NCBI RefSeq assembly: GCF_006345805.1
Contig: NC_043002.1
Span: forward strand, 110,050,001 to 110,114,000
DNA: 64,000 bases
Direction of reading: 5' to 3'
Source: Octopus sinensis
Lineage: Eukaryota
Shown: positions 2,240-63,387 of the stretch, piece after piece
How positions within the stretch are numbered: the first letter of the stretch is position 1
Layout of the letters: each line of letters begins with the position of its first letter
Translations under genes and position numbers: made by a program
Notes under the pieces: generated by a model
Told to the model about the DNA's origin: nothing
Databases searched by the model: none
The model's input: only the letters and a program-made list of their open reading frames with translations

Positions 2240-2359
2240 CTACACATTGATGGCTATTCTGTAACTGGTAACCTGACCTACATCCGCATTGATAGCCCCC
2301 AATTGAATTCTTGCTGATTTGATGACAGCTACCATTTCCAGCAGATAATTCATCAATGT
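2240..2359 (-). pseudogene. Degenerate cbEGF exon (DIDELSAGNGSCHQISKNSIGGYQCGCRSGYQLQNSHQCV) with non-canonical splice sites
   Basis: Exactly 120 nt, phase 1-1 like the other exons; acceptor reads tattctaA| and donor |Ataagtt; Cys1 is TTA and Cys3 is AGC. Confidence 0.8.
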
Positions 2360-6060: not shown

Positions 6061-6151
6061 CCTGTTCCATGTGAGTGCTACAAATACCTTTCACAAAACC
6101 CTATTATGCAAAGATACTGTGAAAAAAGGTGAAATAATTGAAGAATGATAT

Positions 6152-6561
6152 TACTCTTTTACTCTTTTACTTGTTTCAGTCATTTGACTGCAGTCATGCT
6201 GGAGCACCGCCTTTAGTCGAGCAAATCGACCCCGGGACTTATTCTTTGTAAGCCCAATACTTATTCTATCGGTCTCTTTTGCCGAACCGCTAAGTGACGG
6301 GGACATAAACACACCAGCATCGCTTGTCAAGCAATGCTAGGGGGACAAACACAGACACACAAACACACACACATACATATATATATATACATATATACGA
6401 CGGGCTTCTTTCAGTTTCCGTCTACCAAATCCACTCACAAGGCATTGGTCGGCCCGGGCTATAGCAGAAGACACTTGCCCAAGATGCCACGCAGTTGGAC
6501 TGAACCTGGAACCATGTGGCTGGTTAGCAAGCTACTTACCACACAGCCACTCCTGCGCCTA
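6152..6561 (-). mobile_element. tRNA-head SINE, family A
   Basis: Head taggcgcaggagtggctgtgtgg..B-box on minus strand, internal (CA/TA)n, (gagtaaaa)n tail; ~20 copies in the window. Confidence 0.9.
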
Positions 6562-11477: not shown

Positions 11478-12080
11478 CAATCATCATCATCATCATCATC
11501 GTTTAACGTCCGCTTTCCATGCTAGCATGGGTTGGACGGTTCAACTGGGGTCTGGGAAGCCCGAAGACTGCACCAGGCCAGTCAGATCTGGCAGTGTTTC
11601 TACAGCTGGATGCCCTTTCTAACGCCAACCACTCCGTGAGTGTAGTGGGTGCTTTTTATGTGCCATGGACACAGGTGCCAGACGAGGCTGGCGAACGGCC
11701 ATGCTCGGATGGTGTTTTTTATGTGCCACCGACACAGGTGCCAGACAAGGCTGGCGAACGGCCACGCTCGGATGGTGTTTTTTTTTTGTGCCACCGACAC
11801 AGGTGCCAGACGAGGCTGGCGAACGGCCACGCTCGGATGGTGTTTTTTTTGTGCCACCGACACAGGTGCCAGACGAGGCTGGCAAATGGCCACACTCAGA
11901 TGGTGTTTTTTTTGTGCCACCGACACAGGTGCCAGATGAGGCTGGCGAATGGCCACGATCGGATGGTGTTTTTTTTACGTGCCACTGGCACGGAGGCCAG
12001 GCTAGGCTGGCACGGCCACGATCGGATGGTGTTTGTTATGTGCCCACAGCACGGAGGCCAGTCGATGCGGTACTACGGAT
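11478..12080 (-). mobile_element. RTE LINE 3' tail with tandem ~63-bp units and (GAT)n end
   Basis: Matches the 3' UTR of the RTE at 57631-59220; 5 core units plus 2 variant units. Confidence 0.85.
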
Positions 12081-13254: not shown

Positions 13255-13632
13255 ATCATCATCATCATCATCATTTAGCGTCCGCTTTCCATGCTAGCAT
13301 GGGTTGGACGGTTCAACTGGGGTCTGTGAAGCCAGAAGGCTGCATCAGGCCCAGTCTGATCTGGCAGTGTTTCTACGGCTGGATGCCCTTCTTAATGGCA
13401 ACCACTCCGTGAATGTAGTGGGTGCTTTTTATGTGCCACCCGCACAGGTGCCAGACAAAGCTGGCAAACGGCCACGAATGGATGGTGCTTTTTATGTGCC
13501 ACCGGCATGAGGCCAGTCGGGGCAGCGCTGGCGAACGGCCACGAACGGATGGTGCTTTTTTTACGTACCACCGGCACGGGGGCCAGGCGAGGCTGGCAAC
13601 GGCCACGAACGGATGGTGCTTTTTACGTGCTT
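13255..13632 (-). mobile_element. RTE LINE 3' tail
   Basis: (CAT)n followed by tttagcgtccgctttccatgctagcatggg; homologous to the 57631 copy. Confidence 0.85.
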
Positions 13633-19135: not shown

Positions 19136-19735
19136 CATCATCATCATCATCATCATCATTTAACGTCCGCTTTCCATGCTAGCATGGGTTGGACGGTTCA
19201 ACTGGGGTCTGGGGAGCCCGAAAGCTGCACCAGTCCAGTCAGATCTGGCAGTGTTTCTACAGCTGGATGCCCTTCCTAACGCCAACCACTCCGAGAGTGT
19301 AGTGGGTGATTTTATGTGCCACCGACACAGGTGCCAGACGAGGCTGGCAAACGGCCACGCTCGGATGGTGTTTTTTTATGTGCCACCGACACAGGTGCCA
19401 GACGAGGCTGGCAGACGGCCACGCTCGGATGGTGTTTTTATGTGCCACCGACACAGGTGCCAGATGAGGCTGGCAAACGGCCACGATCGGATGGTGTTTG
19501 TTACGTGCCCACAGCACGGAGGCCAGTCGATGCGGTACTGGCTACCGCTACGTTCGGATGGTTTTCCTGTGTGCCACGTGCCACCGGCACTGGTACCACA
19601 AAGATACAAATTCCATTGATGTTCATCTATTTTGATTTGTTTTGATTTTCACTTGCCTCAACAGGTCTTCACAAGTGTCACAAGAAGGAAGGTAAGCACA
19701 GGTGGACTGACTACGTCCCAGGTAAGGGTCACGGG
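19136..19735 (-). mobile_element. RTE LINE 3' tail with three 63-bp core units
   Basis: Homology to the 11478 and 57631 copies. Confidence 0.85.
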
Positions 19736-22494: not shown

Positions 22495-22864
22495 TGGAAC
22501 CAACCACATGGTTCCGGGTTCAGTCCCACTGCGTGGCATCTTGGGCAAGTGTCTTCTGCTATAGCCCCGGGCCGACCAATGCCTTGTGAGTGGATTTGGT
22601 AGACGGAAACTGAAAGAAGCCTGTCGTATATATGTGTATGTGTGTGTGTGTGTGTTTGTGTGTCTGTGTTTGTCCCCCTAGCATTGCTTGACAACCGATG
22701 CTGGTGTGTTTATGTCCCCGTCACTTAGTGGTTCGGCAAAAGAGACCGATAGAATAAGTACTGGGCTTACAAAGAATAAGTCCCAGGGTCGATTTGCTCG
22801 ACTAAAGGCGGTGCTCCAGCATGGCCACAGTCAAATGACTGAAACAAGTAAAAGAGTAAAAGAG
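22495..22864 (+). mobile_element. SINE family A, 5' truncated
   Basis: Homology to family A. Confidence 0.85.
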
Positions 22865-23399
22865 TATACATGTACAACATTTGTGAAAATAGGTGGAGCA
22901 TTTATTGTAGAAAACAACATAATGTAGAATAATGAGTGAATCATTGACAACAACACATTGTACATGTTATGACTTGTATAATATTTGGGGAATGATGAAT
23001 ATAAGTTTCTTACATTCCTGTTATTTTCTTATTTTGGCATTTTTATTTACATCCTCATAGTCTCATTAGTAAACTTCATCATGTATACTTTTCAACAATA
23101 CCGCCAACTGGAAAATTCAAATATTTGTACATGCAAGCAAACTATTGTAATTATCACAAAGTATAGAAAAACACCTGCCATCATTATTGACACCTCAGGT
23201 ATTTTAGTAGATATGTATTATGTACACACACACACACACACACACACACATGTTACATAAATACATCTGCATGTACATATATATAAGCACATATTTATAA
23301 CATATATGTGTATGACTATTTCTTAATTATATCTATCTATCCACCCATCCATCCATTCATTCATCCATTCATCCATCCATTCATCCATCTATCCATCTA

Positions 23400-23525
<126 letters not shown>

Positions 23526-29844: not shown

Positions 29845-29971
29845 GTTTGTGTGTGTGTGTGTGCACGCGCATGCATGAGTGCTATCTGTGTGTGTGTGTG
29901 TGTGTGTGTGTGTCTGTGTGTGTGTGTGTGTGTGTTTGTTGTGTGTGTGTGTGTGTGTGTCTCTCTGTGTG

Positions 29972-30024
<53 letters not shown>

Positions 30025-30031
30025 GTCTGTG

Positions 30032-30066
<35 letters not shown>

Positions 30067-30129
30067 GTTTGTGTGTGTGTGTGAGTGTGTTTGTGTGTGT
30101 GTGTGTGTATGTGTGTGTGTATGTGTGTG

Positions 30130-30164
<35 letters not shown>

Positions 30165-30265
30165 ATTTGTGTGTGTGTGCGTGTGTGTGTGCATGTGTGT
30201 GTGTGTTTTTGTGTTTGTGCATGTGTGTGTGTGTGTTTTTTGTGTGTGTGTGTGTGTGTGTGTGC
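29845..30265. repeat. Long interrupted (GT)n microsatellite
   Basis: Directly visible; source of the spurious poly-HT/poly-CV ORFs. Confidence 0.95.
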
Positions 30266-30473: not shown

Positions 30474-31733
30474 TATCAGGTCATCCCATAAGTTCTATCC
30501 AAATTTTGAATAAAGAAAACAAGTGATCAAATGTTATATTTAATTGAAATTTAATCATCAATGTACTTTCCCTGATTCTCTATGACTTCCTTCCATCTAT
30601 TTACAAGCTTTTTAATCGCATCAATGTAAAACTCTTTTGGTTTCAAAGCGAAGAACTCTGAAGTGTCAGTTTCAACCTCCTCCTGGCTTGCGAAAGTTAT
30701 GTCCCCCAAATGATTCTGTAAACTACGAAACAAATGGTAGTTTGAAGGAGCAAGGTTGGAAGAATAAGGTGGATGAGGAATTTTTTCCCAACCAAGCTCT
30801 TCAATCTTTGTAGTGCGGCGTCGTGAATTGTCCTGATGAAACAACACTCCTTTTCAATTCACTAAAGCACGTCTTTTTTTTTCCTTCAAAGCTTGGTTCA
30901 AACACTGTAATTGCTGACAGTAGACTTGAGCATTGATTGTTGCATTAGGTGGTAACAATTCAAAGTGAATTACTCCTTTGCAATCCCACAAGATAGAGAG
31001 AAGAAATCTTTTTTCCATGAAGTTCCCTTCTCGGTTGTGATTGAGCTTTTTCCCTTTTACCAAGCCACTGTTTACAACGTTTAACATTTCGATAGAAGAC
31101 CCATTTTTCGTCACCAGTCTATCCAAAAAGGGTGAAATGAGGTCATGAGAATGGAGAGAAGAACAGATGTCAACTCAGGGTTTGCAGTTGCTTTTGGACA
31201 ATTCATGAGGCAGCTATTCTCCAAGTTTAGGGACCTTTCCAAGTTGTTGAAGATGATGATGAACATTTGATGGTTGGAATTAAGCTTTATTGCCAATTCT
31301 TCAACTGATAATGCAGAATTTTCTTCAAGTAATGCCTCAAGGAGCTTATCATCAAACTCAACAGGACGTCCTGTTCGATCTTCATCTTCAAGGCTGAAAT
31401 CTCCACTTTCGAATTTTGCAAACCATCTTCTGCAAGTTCTTTCATTCAAGCATTCTTTCACATAAACTGAGTGTATGTTTCAAGTCACTTCGGCTGCAGA
31501 GTTTCCTTTTTTGTACCCATAAAGCACTATGTGCCTTAAATGCTCTTTAGATACTTCCATGTTAGAAAAGGGTTTTAATCAAAGAAATTTTAATTCTATT
31601 ATTCTGTAAAATAATATTTAATTAGTTTAAATGTACACAAATGCATGAAAATAACTTTTAATTCCATTAGACATTCTAAAATACTATTAAATTTCATTCA
31701 ATTTTAAAAAAGGTAAAATTGGGAAAACCTGAG
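30474..31733 (-). mobile_element. Mariner (Mos1-like) transposon, inactivated
   Basis: Transposase 31560 to 30551 (MEVSKEHLRH..., WFAKFESGDFSLED, HQDN, HPPYSSNLAPSNYHLF) with stops and frameshifts; left TIR TA-tcaggtcatccca, partial right TIR tgggaaaacctga. Confidence 0.9.
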
Positions 31734-31839: not shown

Positions 31840-32720
31840 AGTACAAAGATTCTGAAGTCCTATGGTATAATTCATTTTTGGACTCCAAATATCGTCCCAG
31901 ATTGGTAAGCAATTCATTGCACCATTAAATAGATGCTTTCCTAAAACACATAAATACTACCATTTATTCAACAAACACAGTGAAATTATCGTATGCAACA
32001 TCTCACAACATGGAGTACTACATACACAAATACAACAACCAGAAATTGAACACACAAACAACGTCTGCTGGTAGAGAACAAACAAATCAAAACTACACAG
32101 AATTTAACAAGAATAACCAAAATAAACAACAGATAGACTGCAAAATCTCAGAGAGCATAAAAGACGGTGACAATATAGTTGAAATATATAATCTAAAAGA
32201 TCCAACAAAACAGATTACTGATTAAACAAAGCCTCAGGTACTAGAAATCAAACGGAACAGAATCAAAAAGCCACCAGATAAACATAAGAATGATAAGAAT
32301 ACGATTCAATGCACATGCCATAGAAAATCCGCATGTCCGCTCCTGAACCAATGTGCTCAAAAAAACATTGTATATAAATGCATAATCTATACTTCTCAAC
32401 ATATTTACATGTACAATAAGTGCCACTGAAAACCAATTAAAAGTCCGTTATTGAAACCACATCTTGTTATTTCTGAAAAATAGACGGCATATGACCTCGC
32501 TGGCAGACTTCATATGGGGACTGGAAGAATCAAAAATTAAAGACCAAATAGAATGGCCAAAAATTAAAAAACGCACATCCATGTACTTCACTATCCGGCA
32601 AATGTGACCCTTGCCTTGAGGAAGCACTGAGTATTCTACTGAGTAATGAAAATCTAGTGAATAATCATGATGAGAAAATTGCTACATGTAACCACCGTGC
32701 CAAATATGCATTTTCCAGAA
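31840..32720 (+). mobile_element. Decayed Penelope-like ORF (RT C-terminal linker to GIY-YIG region)
   Basis: VLWYN..RCFPKTHKYYHLFNKH..VKLSYA and ATENQLKVRY..TSLADFIWGL remnants. Confidence 0.65.
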
Positions 32721-37475: not shown

Positions 37476-37880
37476 ATACTCTTTTACTTGTTTCAGTCAT
37501 TTGACTGTGGCCATGCTAGAGCACCGCCTTTAGTCGAGCAAATCGACCCTGGGATTTATTCTTTGTAAGCCCAGTACTTATTCTATCAGTCTCTTTTGCC
37601 GAACCACTAAGTGACGGGGACGTAAACACACCAGCATCGGTTGTCAAGCAATGCTAGGGGGACAAACACAGACTCACAAACATATACACACACACTTATA
37701 TATATATGCCTATATACGACAGGCTTCTTTTAGTTTCCATCTACCAAATCCACTCACAAGGCATTGGTCGGCCCGGGGCTATAGCAGAAGACACTTGCCC
37801 AAATGCCACGCAGTGGGACTGAACCCGGAACCATGTGGTTGGTTAGCAAGCTACTTACCACACAGCCACTCCTGCACCTA
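37476..37880 (-). mobile_element. SINE family A
   Basis: Full-length homology. Confidence 0.9.
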
Positions 37881-38051
37881 TATAAGTCCATTTCCATTAG
37901 AGAGGAAGGAGTCCTTAATTTTTCTTGTGTTACTGTTTATAAGTGTAAATCATAATATTTAGACACTGAAGCATGATTGTACAATTATTCTGTTTTCATA
38001 AATATGATGACATCAGTCAACTAAAATCATTCCCAAATTGGAAGCATACAC

Positions 38052-38173
38052 TCACCAACACAGTTTCTTTGCTACAAGCTGGTATCCTGATTTACAGGAA
38101 CATTTGTAGCTTCCAACTGAATTGAGACAGTTATGATGGCAGCCACCATTTCCTTTAGCACATTCATTTATAT
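38052..38173 (-). CDS. cbEGF exon [39 protein letters not shown](W*); 118 nt to the donor, possibly terminal
   Basis: Acceptor ttttccag|; donor |gtgagt at 38055; 2 nt shorter than its sister exons; read-through gives TGG TGA (stop at 38052-38054). Confidence 0.7.
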
Positions 38174-38299
38174 CTGGAAAATTATCATAGGAGAGAAAAT
38201 TTTATTAAAATAAAACATGCACCTATATTTACATACAAATGCATTTACTTGAATTTTGAATACATATATTATCTACTATATATATATATTCACACACAA

Positions 38300-43725: not shown

Positions 43726-44290
43726 ATGTGTCGGTGGCATAAAAAAAACACCATCCGAGCGTGGCTGTTCGCCAGCCTCGTCTGGCACCTGTGTCGGTGG
43801 CACATAAAAAACACCATCCGAGCTTGGCCGTTCGCCAGCCTCGTCTGGCATCTGTGTCGGTGGCACATAAAAAACACCATCCGAGCGTGGCCGTTCGCCA
43901 GCCTCGTCTGGCACCTGTGTCGGTGGCACATAAAAAACACCATCCGAGCGTGGCTGTTCGCCAGCCCCGTCTGGCACCTGTGTCGGTGGCACAAAAAAAA
44001 CACCATCCGAGCGTGGCCGTTCGCCAGCCTCGTCTGGCACCTGTGTCGGTGTCACATAAAAAACACCATCCGAGCGTGGCCGTTCGCCAGCCTCGTCTGG
44101 CACCTGTGTCGGTGGCACATAAAAAGCACCCACTACACTCACGGAGTGGTTGGCATTAGGAAGGGCATCCAGCTGTAGAAACACTGCCAGATCTGACTGG
44201 CCTGGTGCAGCCTTCGGGCTTCCCAGACCCCAGTTGAACCGTCCAACCCATGCTAGCATGGAAAGCGGACGTTAAATGATGATGATGATG
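43726..44290 (+). mobile_element. Young RTE 3' tail with six 63-bp units, nested in an older RTE tail
   Basis: Units spaced ~63 bp; (GAT)n end; flanks 43620-43725 and 44290-44340 resemble an older tail. Confidence 0.85.
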
Positions 44291-46060: not shown

Positions 46061-46180
46061 CTACATACTTTTTACCATTGTTAAGTTTATAGCCAAGTCT
46101 ACACTGACATTGGTAGCTTCCTTGAGTGTTTTTACAAATGTGTTGACATCCTCCATTTGATTTGTAGCATTCATTGATAT
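46061..46180 (-). CDS. cbEGF exon [40 protein letters not shown] (Cys6 encoded as Tyr)
   Basis: 120 nt, phase 1-1, acceptor tattctag|, donor |gtaagt; not in the ORF track. Confidence 0.88.
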
Positions 46181-53576: not shown

Positions 53577-53696
53577 CAGAGCACTGCTTGTTGTTCACAA
53601 GCTGGTATCCTGATTTACAGGAACATTTGTAGCTTCCAACTGAATTGAGACAGTTATGTTGGCAGCCACCATTTCCTTTAGCACATTCATTTATAT
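53577..53696 (-). CDS. cbEGF exon [40 protein letters not shown]
   Basis: 120 nt, phase 1-1, ttttccag| and |gtgagt; six Cys and the D-x-N-E calcium-binding consensus. Confidence 0.92.
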
Positions 53697-53726
53697 CTGG
53701 AAAATTACCATAGGAGAGAAAATTCA

Positions 53727-56969: not shown

Positions 56970-57365
56970 TTACTCTCTCTTTTACTTGTTTCAGTCATTT
57001 GACTGCGGCCATGCTGGAGCACCGCCTTTAGTCGAGCAAATCGACCCCGGGACTTATTCTTTGTAAGCCCTGTACTTATTCTATCGGTCTCTTTTGCCGA
57101 ACCGCTAAGTGACGGGGACGTAAACACACCAGCATCGGTTGTCAAGCAATGCTAGGGGGATAAACACACACACACACACAAACACATACACACATACATA
57201 TATATATACATATATACGACAGGCTTCTTTCAGTTTCCGTCTACCAAATCCACTCACAAGGCATTGGTCGGCCCGGGGCTATAGCAGAAGACACTTGCCC
57301 AAGATGCCACGCAGTGGGACTGAACCCGGAACCATGTGGCTGGTTAGCAAGCTACTTACCACACT
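56970..57365 (-). mobile_element. SINE family A
   Basis: Near full-length homology. Confidence 0.9.
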
Positions 57366-57630
57366 AGCAGTTTTGTTCATTTTTTGAACTTGTCAAATAA
57401 AATTTTTTTTGTCAATGTACAAAAAAATTTTATTTGACAAGTTTGAAAAATGAATGGAAGTGCTAATAATAATGACTAAATAAAAAAATTCTCTTTCCAA
57501 AATTCTGGCGACCTCCTCTTTTCCCAATATTCAATATCTGTACCCCACTTCTAACACTCTATACATATATATATATATATATATATACAGAAATCCCTCA
57601 CCATATTGTGGTTTACCTATCACGGTTTAT

Positions 57631-59220
57631 TCATCATCATCGTTTAACGTCCGTTCACCATGCTAGCATGGGTTGGACGGTTCGACCGGGGATCTGGGAA
57701 GCCAGAAGGCTGCACCAGGCTCCAGTCTTATCTGGCAATGTTTCTACAGCTGGATGCCTTTCCTAACGCCAACCACTCCATGAGTGTAGTGGGTGCTTTT
57801 TATGTGCCGCCCGCACAGGTGCCAGGCAAGGCTGGCAACGGCCACAGTCGGATTGGTGCAATTTATGTGCCACCGGCACAGAAGCCAGTCGAGGCGGCGC
57901 TGGCATCGGCCACGATTCGGATAGTGCTTTTTTACGTACCACCAGTCCAGGGGTCCTGGCATCTGCCAGGTGCCAGTCATAGGATTGGTTCAATTTCGAT
58001 TTCGATTTCGATTTCACTTGCCCCAACATGTCTTCGCAAGCAAAGGGGGTTGGCATGGGTGCCTGTCGTCGGATGAGGTTCGATATCGACTTCACTTGCT
58101 TCAACAGGTCTTTGTGTGTCCAAGGGAGGAAAGGCATGCATAAGTGGGCTGGACTCACTTGTCCTGCCTGGTCTTCTCACGTACAGCATATTTCCAAAGG
58201 TCTCGGTCGCCGGTCATTTCCTCAGTGAGGCCTAAAGTTCGAAGGTTGTGCTTCACCACCTCGTCCCAGGTTTTCCTGGGTCTACCTCTTCCACGGGTTC
58301 CCTCAACTGCTAGGGATTGGCACTTTCTCACACACCTATCTTCATCCATTCTCGCCACATGACCATACCAGTGCAATCGTCTTTCTTGCACACCACAACT
58401 GATGCTTCTTAGGTACAACATTTCTCTCAAGGTACTAACGCTCTGTCGAGTATGTACACTGACATTACACATCCATCGGAGCATACCGGCTTCATTCCTC
58501 ACGAGCTTACGCATGTCCTCAGCAGTCATGGCCCATGTTTCACTGCCATGTAGTATGGCTGTTCGTACACATGCATCATACAGTCTGCCTTTTACTCTGA
58601 GCGAGAGGCCTTTAGTCACCAGCAGAGGTAAGAGCTCCCTAAACTTTGCCCAGGCTATTCTTATTCTAGCAGTTACACTTTCAATGCACCCACCCCCACT
58701 ACTGACTTGGTCACCTAGATAACGGAAGCTATCAACTACTTCTAGTTTTTCCCCCTGGAAAGTGACGGAAGTTGTTTTCTGCAGATTTTTGGAGGTTAAT
58801 GCTCCCGAGCATCTGCCACATACAAAAACTATCTTCCCAGTTAGCCTACCTTTGACATTGCTGCACCTCTTATGTGTCCATAGCTTACACTGGGTACATC
58901 TTATAGAGTTTCTACCTACACCTTTTCTACAGATCGAGCAGTGCCATCTTCCTGAAGACATTTGTGGATTGTCTACCTTCCTACTTATTAGTACTTTGGT
59001 TTTAGCTAGGTTGACTCTAAGGCCCCTCGATTCTAAACCCTCCTTCCACACCTGGAACTTCTCCTCCAGTTCTGATAGTGACTCAGCAATTAGAGCAAGC
59101 TCCCAGGGGCAACCTGTCTTGAATTCCTCCGTAATTGCTTGGAGGACTATGATAAATAGGAGGGGGCTGAGTACTGAACCCTGGTGGACCCCAACCTCTA
59201 CTTTGAATTCTTCTGTGTAT
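57631..59220 (-). mobile_element. 5'-truncated RTE-clade LINE: open ORF ~59219 to 58155, long 3' UTR, (GAT)n tail
   Basis: GVHQGSVLSPLLF, VNLAKTK, FRYLGD, ILHGSETW, WYGHV and GRGRPRKTW motifs; YADD absent; PHD-like Cys-rich insert. Confidence 0.92.
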
Positions 59221-62802: not shown

Positions 62803-62922
62803 CAGAGCACTGTTTGTTGTTCACAAGCTGGTATCCTGATTTACAGGAACATTTGTAGCTTCCAACTGAATTGAGACAGTTATGTTGGCAGCCACCATTT
62901 CCTTTAGCACATTCATTTATAT
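62803..62922 (-). CDS. cbEGF exon [40 protein letters not shown]
   Basis: 120 nt, phase 1-1, canonical splice sites; 119/120 identical to 53577-53696. Confidence 0.92.
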
Positions 62923-63387
62923 CTGGAAAATTACCATAGGAGAGAAAATTCTTGAAAATAATTCACACAAAGACACACGCAGATAGACATTTTCTATAAA
63001 AGAACGTATTTTCTTATTCTCAAAAGTACCTATATATATTTCCTTCAAACCTCCTGGATTAACAATGTGCAAAAAGGCTCAGGTCCTAAACCATTGTCCA
63101 CTATAGCCCATCCACCAACTGTGTTCAATTCACCTTCTACTCTACCACTCAACTTCTCCAGCATGCAACATGTCACAACATTCAGTTTCTCCAAGTTGAT
63201 TTAACTACATTTCCAATCTTTCCCAAATCCTGCCCCACTCATACATGAATACCTGATTTGCCGTTCCTTTGCTTCTAGTCAATCTCATCATGGAACCTCC
63301 ATCTTCCTACTCTCACTGCAAAAACTAACTTTTTGTCAACATCACTCCACAAGTGTAGATTCAAAATGTTTGGCTTCATTATGGATG

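Follow-up and report, generated by a model that had tools for sequence, protein, structure and literature searches.

The question raised by this locus is what becomes of a calcium-binding epidermal growth factor (EGF) exon that has lost two nucleotides near its 3′ end, so that its splice donor reads as a stop codon in the frame of the exon while all six cysteines are kept. Single symmetrical phase 1-1 exons encode calcium-binding EGF modules in fibrillins, fibulins, SCUBE, MEGF6 and genes of the LDL-receptor family. An earlier note on this DNA had suggested that here the frameshift may have created a new C terminus with an intact EGF module. We analyzed the whole 64,000-nucleotide stretch of Octopus sinensis DNA that holds the exon (the window) together with the corresponding locus of Octopus vulgaris, and find it most probable that the exon is an ordinary copy, redundant or in decay.

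An EGF exon with an asymmetric exit

The B-type calcium-binding EGF exon for which we use the shorthand E38 runs from 38173 to 38056 on the minus strand and is 118 nt long, as the earlier note had it, against 120 nt for its sisters. On that strand, ttttccAG precedes an exon start of ATATAAATGAATGT (also given as ATATAAATGAATGTGCT), and the exon end CAGCTTGTAGCAAAGAAACTGTGTTG is followed by GTGAGT. The acceptor AG (38174-38175, minus strand) has a polypyrimidine tract one nucleotide off those of the sisters, and the donor GT (38055-38054) sits in an intact hexamer; the splice signals of E38 are equal in quality to those of its sisters, and the splice-signal loss by which pseudoexons are recognized is absent.

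Read from its start, E38 resembles the EGF exons of fibrillin, fibulin, SCUBE, MEGF6 and LDL-receptor genes in its opening DINEC motif, its C-x-N-x4-Y-x-C motif of the hydroxylation type, its six cysteines in canonical EGF spacing, its phase-1 entry and its layout of one module per exon. The cysteines fall at residues 5, 12, 16, 25, 27 and 39, which are the indices found in the 120-nt sisters E62 and E53, and the claim that all six were kept is thereby upheld. The peptide matches Pfam EGF_CA (PF07645) at 42.3 bits, against a cut-off of 27; the alignment covers residues 1-32 of 40 and ends before an atypical loop between the fifth and sixth cysteines, whereas the sisters are aligned to the end. 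Judged from this predicted peptide, the calcium-binding EGF module of E38 is complete through Cys6. Where E38 parts from classic symmetrical EGF exons is in its length, 118 nt instead of 120, and in its asymmetric exit, in which two bases of a codon are carried over instead of one. Use of its donor would therefore shift the frame downstream, as had been pointed out before. An in-phase alternative donor four bases upstream (GTTGGT, found by eye) would bring back phase 1 at the cost of Cys6, and it is weak; inspection by eye from E38 down to the TGA revealed no in-phase alternative donor. A-to-I RNA editing, considered as a rescue, cannot mend a change of two nucleotides in length.

The EGF exons of the window were located by a pattern scan and tblastn over its whole length, which gave four further exons on the same strand as E38, namely E62, E53, E46 and a relic at about 2240-2359. 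The concatenated exons have a sole close protein match, a 255-residue O. vulgaris product (P0001) named "epidermal growth factor-like domains 6 isoform X1." Its locus (L001; GCA_951406725.2, OX597819.1:11,032,813-11,133,624) is collinear in blastn with positions 23514-64000 of the window at 94-97% identity, with 2.7% substitutions and 0.6 indel events per 100 bp over 33.6 kb, a divergence consistent with O. sinensis as the source of the window. The two species split about 2.5 million years ago (PMC10700109). P0001 is laid out as a signal peptide, a Cys-rich N-terminal region, EGFa, EGFb (E62), EGFc (E53), a frameshifted EGFd (E46) and an 18-residue tail exon, and the window holds the 3′ two-thirds of this gene on its minus strand, with EGFa lying outside. 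L001 carries the orthologous gene, in which E62, E53, E46 and the tail exon match exons of P0001 and the E38 orthologue is missing from the model.

Word-indexed protein searches with the concatenated EGF exons, or with full P0001 plus E46 and E38, returned P0001 as the sole octopus match, and no annotated orthologue from any other cephalopod was found in the protein collections searched. An exhaustive HMMER search with the N terminus plus EGFa was swamped by multi-EGF proteins, among which only P0001 covers residues 1-80, and was thereby uninformative. Pfam detects no EMI domain in the N-terminal region of P0001, and the label "EMI-like/MEGF6-like" goes back to a CCPGF motif spotted by eye and to a name assigned automatically. 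The MEGF6-like name itself stems from automated Blast2GO labelling (PMC10700109).

The five exons of the array follow the order A-B-B-A-B (EGFa, E62, E53, E46, E38). EGFa and E46/EGFd, of A type, are 89% identical; E62, E53 and E38, of B type, are 92-99% identical (93% for E62 and E38), and the two types share about 60-70% identity. The likeness extends into the introns of O. vulgaris, where L001 58617-59262 (EGFa) has a collinear match of about 77% to 77839-78897 (EGFd), and where EGFb and the E38 orthologue match at 90%. A two-exon unit, A+B, was therefore duplicated, with E46 and E38 as the distal copy.

E62 (62803-62922, minus strand; B-type, 120 nt, phase 1-1; orthologous to EGFb) and E53 (53577-53696, minus strand; B-type, 120 nt; orthologous to EGFc) both end in ...LVNNKQCS, differ from each other at a single nucleotide and are intact in both species, with 1 and 0 between-species changes, respectively. 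E46 (46061-46180, minus strand; A-type, 120 nt; orthologous to EGFd) shows exactly two differences between species, and both are damaging. Here, Cys6 has changed from TGT to TAT (Tyr, at 46067-46065), and in O. vulgaris EGFd (L001 ~78026), Cys6 is kept and one A has been lost from an A5 run, as a result of which P0001 ends in out-of-frame residues. The two lesions are independent, and comparison with EGFa shows both to be derived. The O. vulgaris assembly is ONT R9.4.1-based (PMC10700109), and the 1-nt deletion in the A5 run might be an ONT homopolymer error. P0001 is the only available gene model, with only the longest product per gene on record; it lacks the E38 orthologue, and its 3′ end uses a cryptic donor inside the frameshifted EGFd exon, so that real splicing cannot safely be read from it. 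It deserves to be flagged that, for this gene, the public protein model of O. vulgaris ends in a frameshifted exon.

Origin of the donor stop and of the retained cysteine

The phase-1 reading of E38 ends in Trp (T38057 and G38056 from the exon, G38055 from the intron), which is followed by a TGA inside the GTGAGT donor (38052-38054, minus strand) that comes into frame only on read-through of the intron. The Trp-stop described in the earlier note is therefore read correctly, and what does not follow from it is a selected new C terminus. When two exon bases are carried over to a GTRAGT donor, the result is N-N-G and then T-R-A, which is an instant TGA or TAA, and all four donors of the array in the window give such an ending when read in that phase (W-stop for E62, E53 and E38, R-stop for E46). 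Any shift of -2 or +1 in these exons would thus turn the donor into a stop.

A similar argument applies to Cys6, which had been proposed to be rescued by a TGTGT run that supplies a cysteine in the shifted frame. MAFFT puts the 2-nt gap of E38 relative to its sisters at CTGTG--TTG. When all gap positions are enumerated, those at or after the Cys6 codon give 7 mismatches and those between Cys5 and Cys6, where the rescue would place the gap, give 9-11; the margin is modest because the last ~24 nt of E38 are 29% diverged from the sisters. In the favored alignment, GTA GCA AAG AAA CTG TGT followed by TG stands opposite GTG AAC AAC AAA CAG TGC followed by TCT G. As far as these alignments tell, the two bases were probably lost at or just after Cys6, and the cysteines were probably never out of frame. 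With the gap in this position, retention of Cys6 is expected and a rescue by the TGTGT run is probably unneeded.

Reading E38 backward from its donor gives ...TAG CAA AGA AAC TGT GTT G (QRNCV). The letters of the RNCV reading in phase 1 are present as noted earlier, but the same frame contains a TAG at 38074-38072, so that at most five codons of it could be ancestral. When up to four mismatches are allowed, neither the window nor the O. vulgaris locus contains another copy of the divergent 22-nt end of E38, and a local donor for a micro-conversion of this end was rejected for that reason. For scans of genomes for such events, the lesson is one of caution, since by-products such as a donor stop and a cysteine kept after a small indel are to be expected and are no signs of adaptation.

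Age of the loss and upkeep of the exon body

The O. vulgaris orthologue of E38 (L001 82059-82176) is also 118 nt long and has the same end, GTAGCAAAGAAACTGTGTTG followed by GTGAGT, the last 26 nt of the exon being exactly alike in the two species. Finding the short exon in two assemblies from different individuals shows that the loss is not an assembly error, the O. vulgaris assembly being that of another individual and probably of another species, and finding it in two genomes 2.7% substitutions apart shows that the loss is older than their split. The idea that the length of 118 nt reflects a consensus indel error of the present assembly, in place of a true exon of 120 nt, can be dismissed as having next to no probability in view of the identical exon end in an independent assembly and of a sequence context that is not a homopolymer. 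The frame-disrupting lesion expected of a pseudoexon is thus present in both lineages. E38 with 120 nt of flank (238 nt in all) shows a single between-species difference, CAA (Gln) in O. vulgaris and CAT (His) here. Since divergence is only 2.7% and equal conservation between the species is found in 8% of random 238-nt windows, such conservation carries no power on whether E38 is constrained.

Nucleotides 1-95 of E38 and about 28 nt of the upstream intron show 0-1 differences from the intact sisters, whereas the 3′ intron flanks of the B exons are 13-15% diverged, and about 12-14 differences would be expected in nucleotides 1-95 (P below 1e-4, Poisson estimate). This is too similar for neutrality and indicates that E38 has not been drifting freely since the duplication. 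The stretch contains no synonymous difference from the sisters where about three are expected. Either selection or gene conversion from the sisters would maintain the body of E38, and the lack of synonymous differences leans to conversion, although purifying selection could also be the cause. The shared stretches lie within 62803-62950, 53577-53725 and 38056-38201 (minus strand) in exons 9-15 kb apart, and suggest concerted evolution by gene conversion.

Fate of E38 and of its gene

The tail exon (32464-32520, minus strand), with which coding sequence ends in the O. vulgaris model, keeps its acceptor AG. Entered in phase 1, as from a normal EGF exon, it encodes V-P-I-stop; entered from E38, with two nucleotides carried over, it encodes CPHMKSASEVICRLFFRNNKMWFQ-stop; and entered as in the O. 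vulgaris model, it encodes SPYEVCQRG.... Between the species it has acquired 3 substitutions and two indels (-4 and +1, which sum to -3) in 57 nt. Such fast change suggests that little beyond the first codons is constrained, which fits V-P-I-stop followed by untranslated sequence. An AATAAA lies about 550 nt downstream of the tail exon in both species.

The relic at about 2240-2359 (minus strand) lies some 30 kb beyond the tail exon. It has lost Cys1 and Cys3 as well as both splice dinucleotides (AG has become AA and GT has become AT). At only 63-67% identity to the B-type exons, it is far older. The earlier note had taken the frameshift of E38 to explain the decay of this relic, an idea weakened by the great divergence of the relic, by the tail exon at 32520, which sits between the two, and by the fact that E46 is damaged too. 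There is no other exon of this gene type near the relic, which stands alone. A paralogous gene around it was considered and rejected, because N-terminal-type exons are found nowhere in the window.

We give about an even chance to the view that, as the distal A+B pair erodes, E38 is a redundant cassette, either skipped or tolerated. According to this scheme, two bases would have been clipped from the last codon of E38, the distal B copy of the duplicated A+B unit, changing only its exit phase, from 1 to 2, after which the donor stop follows automatically. The distal pair would be redundant, under relaxed constraint and drifting. Phase 1-1 exons being skippable without penalty, the usual product would join an intact EGF exon to the tail exon (V-P-I-stop) with E38 skipped; inclusion of E38 would merely shift the frame within a short last exon, and gene conversion from the intact B exons would keep its first 95 nt pristine. 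E38 resembles decaying duplicated exons, or pseudoexons, in carrying a frame-breaking lesion shared by both species and in being omitted from the only gene model, and the gene resembles decaying exon arrays in that the neighboring duplicate, E46, is damaged and an older relic lies further along. Unlike a typical long-dead exon, E38 still has perfect splice sites and a perfect stretch of 95 nt at its start, unless gene conversion is what refreshes them, and with splice signals as good as those of its sisters, the spliceosome should recognize E38, which argues against skipping. Redundancy of the distal pair would have little meaning beyond this gene, for which it would offer a clean, dated case of a tandem array of symmetrical EGF exons eroding distally.

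It is possible, but distinctly less likely, that E38 is a working last EGF exon whose donor is used and spliced to the tail exon, giving a protein of five EGF modules. Its product would replace V-P-I with an alternative C terminus of 24-27 residues (CPHMKSASEV[I/L]CRLF...KMWFQ), and since the stop would lie in the last exon, the transcript would escape nonsense-mediated decay. This possibility is consistent with the intact, sister-grade splice sites, the complete EGF module and a body whose first 95 nt are kept like those of functional copies, and with a tail exon that is open in that frame in both species despite two indels, as these sum to -3. It sits less well with the rapid change of the tail exon in those same 57 nt, with the omission of E38 from the one available gene model and with the damage to the exon upstream, E46. 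Should E38 be in use, it would be a modest example of how a frameshift can give a protein a new tail.

Rather improbable is the notion that the whole gene is dying, with E38, E46 and the relic at 2240 as successive stages of pseudogene decay. Three damaged EGF exons, a lone gene model that ends in a frameshifted exon and the failure to find any other annotated cephalopod orthologue in the protein collections all point in this direction. Against it, the signal peptide, the N-terminal region and EGFa to EGFc are open in O. vulgaris and have good splice sites, and neither species shows damage in E62 or E53, which have 0-1 changes.

We are equally doubtful that the 2-nt loss has been co-opted as a new C terminus, whether by read-through, ending in ...KKLCW, or through the last exon, with a Cys-containing tail of about 25 residues. 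If this were true, selection and not gene conversion would keep the body of E38 identical to its sisters. The first of these two routes is the one originally put forward; along it, the donor would be left unused, the transcript would be polyadenylated within the intron and a truncated protein with an intact EGF module would end in Trp-stop. Truncated secreted isoforms such as soluble receptors do arise by skipping of a 5′ splice site combined with an intronic poly(A) site, and E38 resembles them in that an in-frame TGA comes directly behind the exon-intron boundary and that, in both species, an AATAAA follows within the intron at about 500 nt (495 nt past the donor). It differs from them in that its donor is strong rather than weak, being a perfect GTGAGT like those of the spliced sisters, and in that its stop is a by-product of the donor consensus, generic for this phase. 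Moreover, AATAAA is common in this DNA, which has 30-46% G+C; both the TGA and the AATAAA are expected by chance, and none of the proteins among 5.8 billion sequences contains the words of QLVAKKLCW. We therefore regard the read-through product as quite unlikely.

Outside its EGF exons, the window consists of SINE and other repeat DNA. A SINE-like repeat of ~400 bp occurs at least 20 times, at 85-95% identity and in both orientations (e.g., 6150-6560, 22498-22866, 37477-37884 and 56977-57368), and the E38 donor has one of these copies about 170 nt downstream. A 63-bp unit is repeated in tandem (about 6 copies, 88-95% matches) at 11648-12044 (plus strand) and, inverted, at 43727-44130, within a larger repeated element, and shorter arrays occur at 13421-13630 and 19305-19509. 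Long microsatellites are found at 29887-30264 (about 190 copies of TG) and 23398-23520 (about 61 copies of TA), and many further TA runs flank the exons. Two transposon remnants lie on the minus strand: an ORF at 31111-31461 that matches the helix-turn-helix (HTH) domain of Mos1-type transposases (24.9 bits), and a 298-residue ORF at 58155-59051 whose match to a PHD finger stays below threshold (22.8 bits, cut-off 24) and which is probably part of a retroelement.
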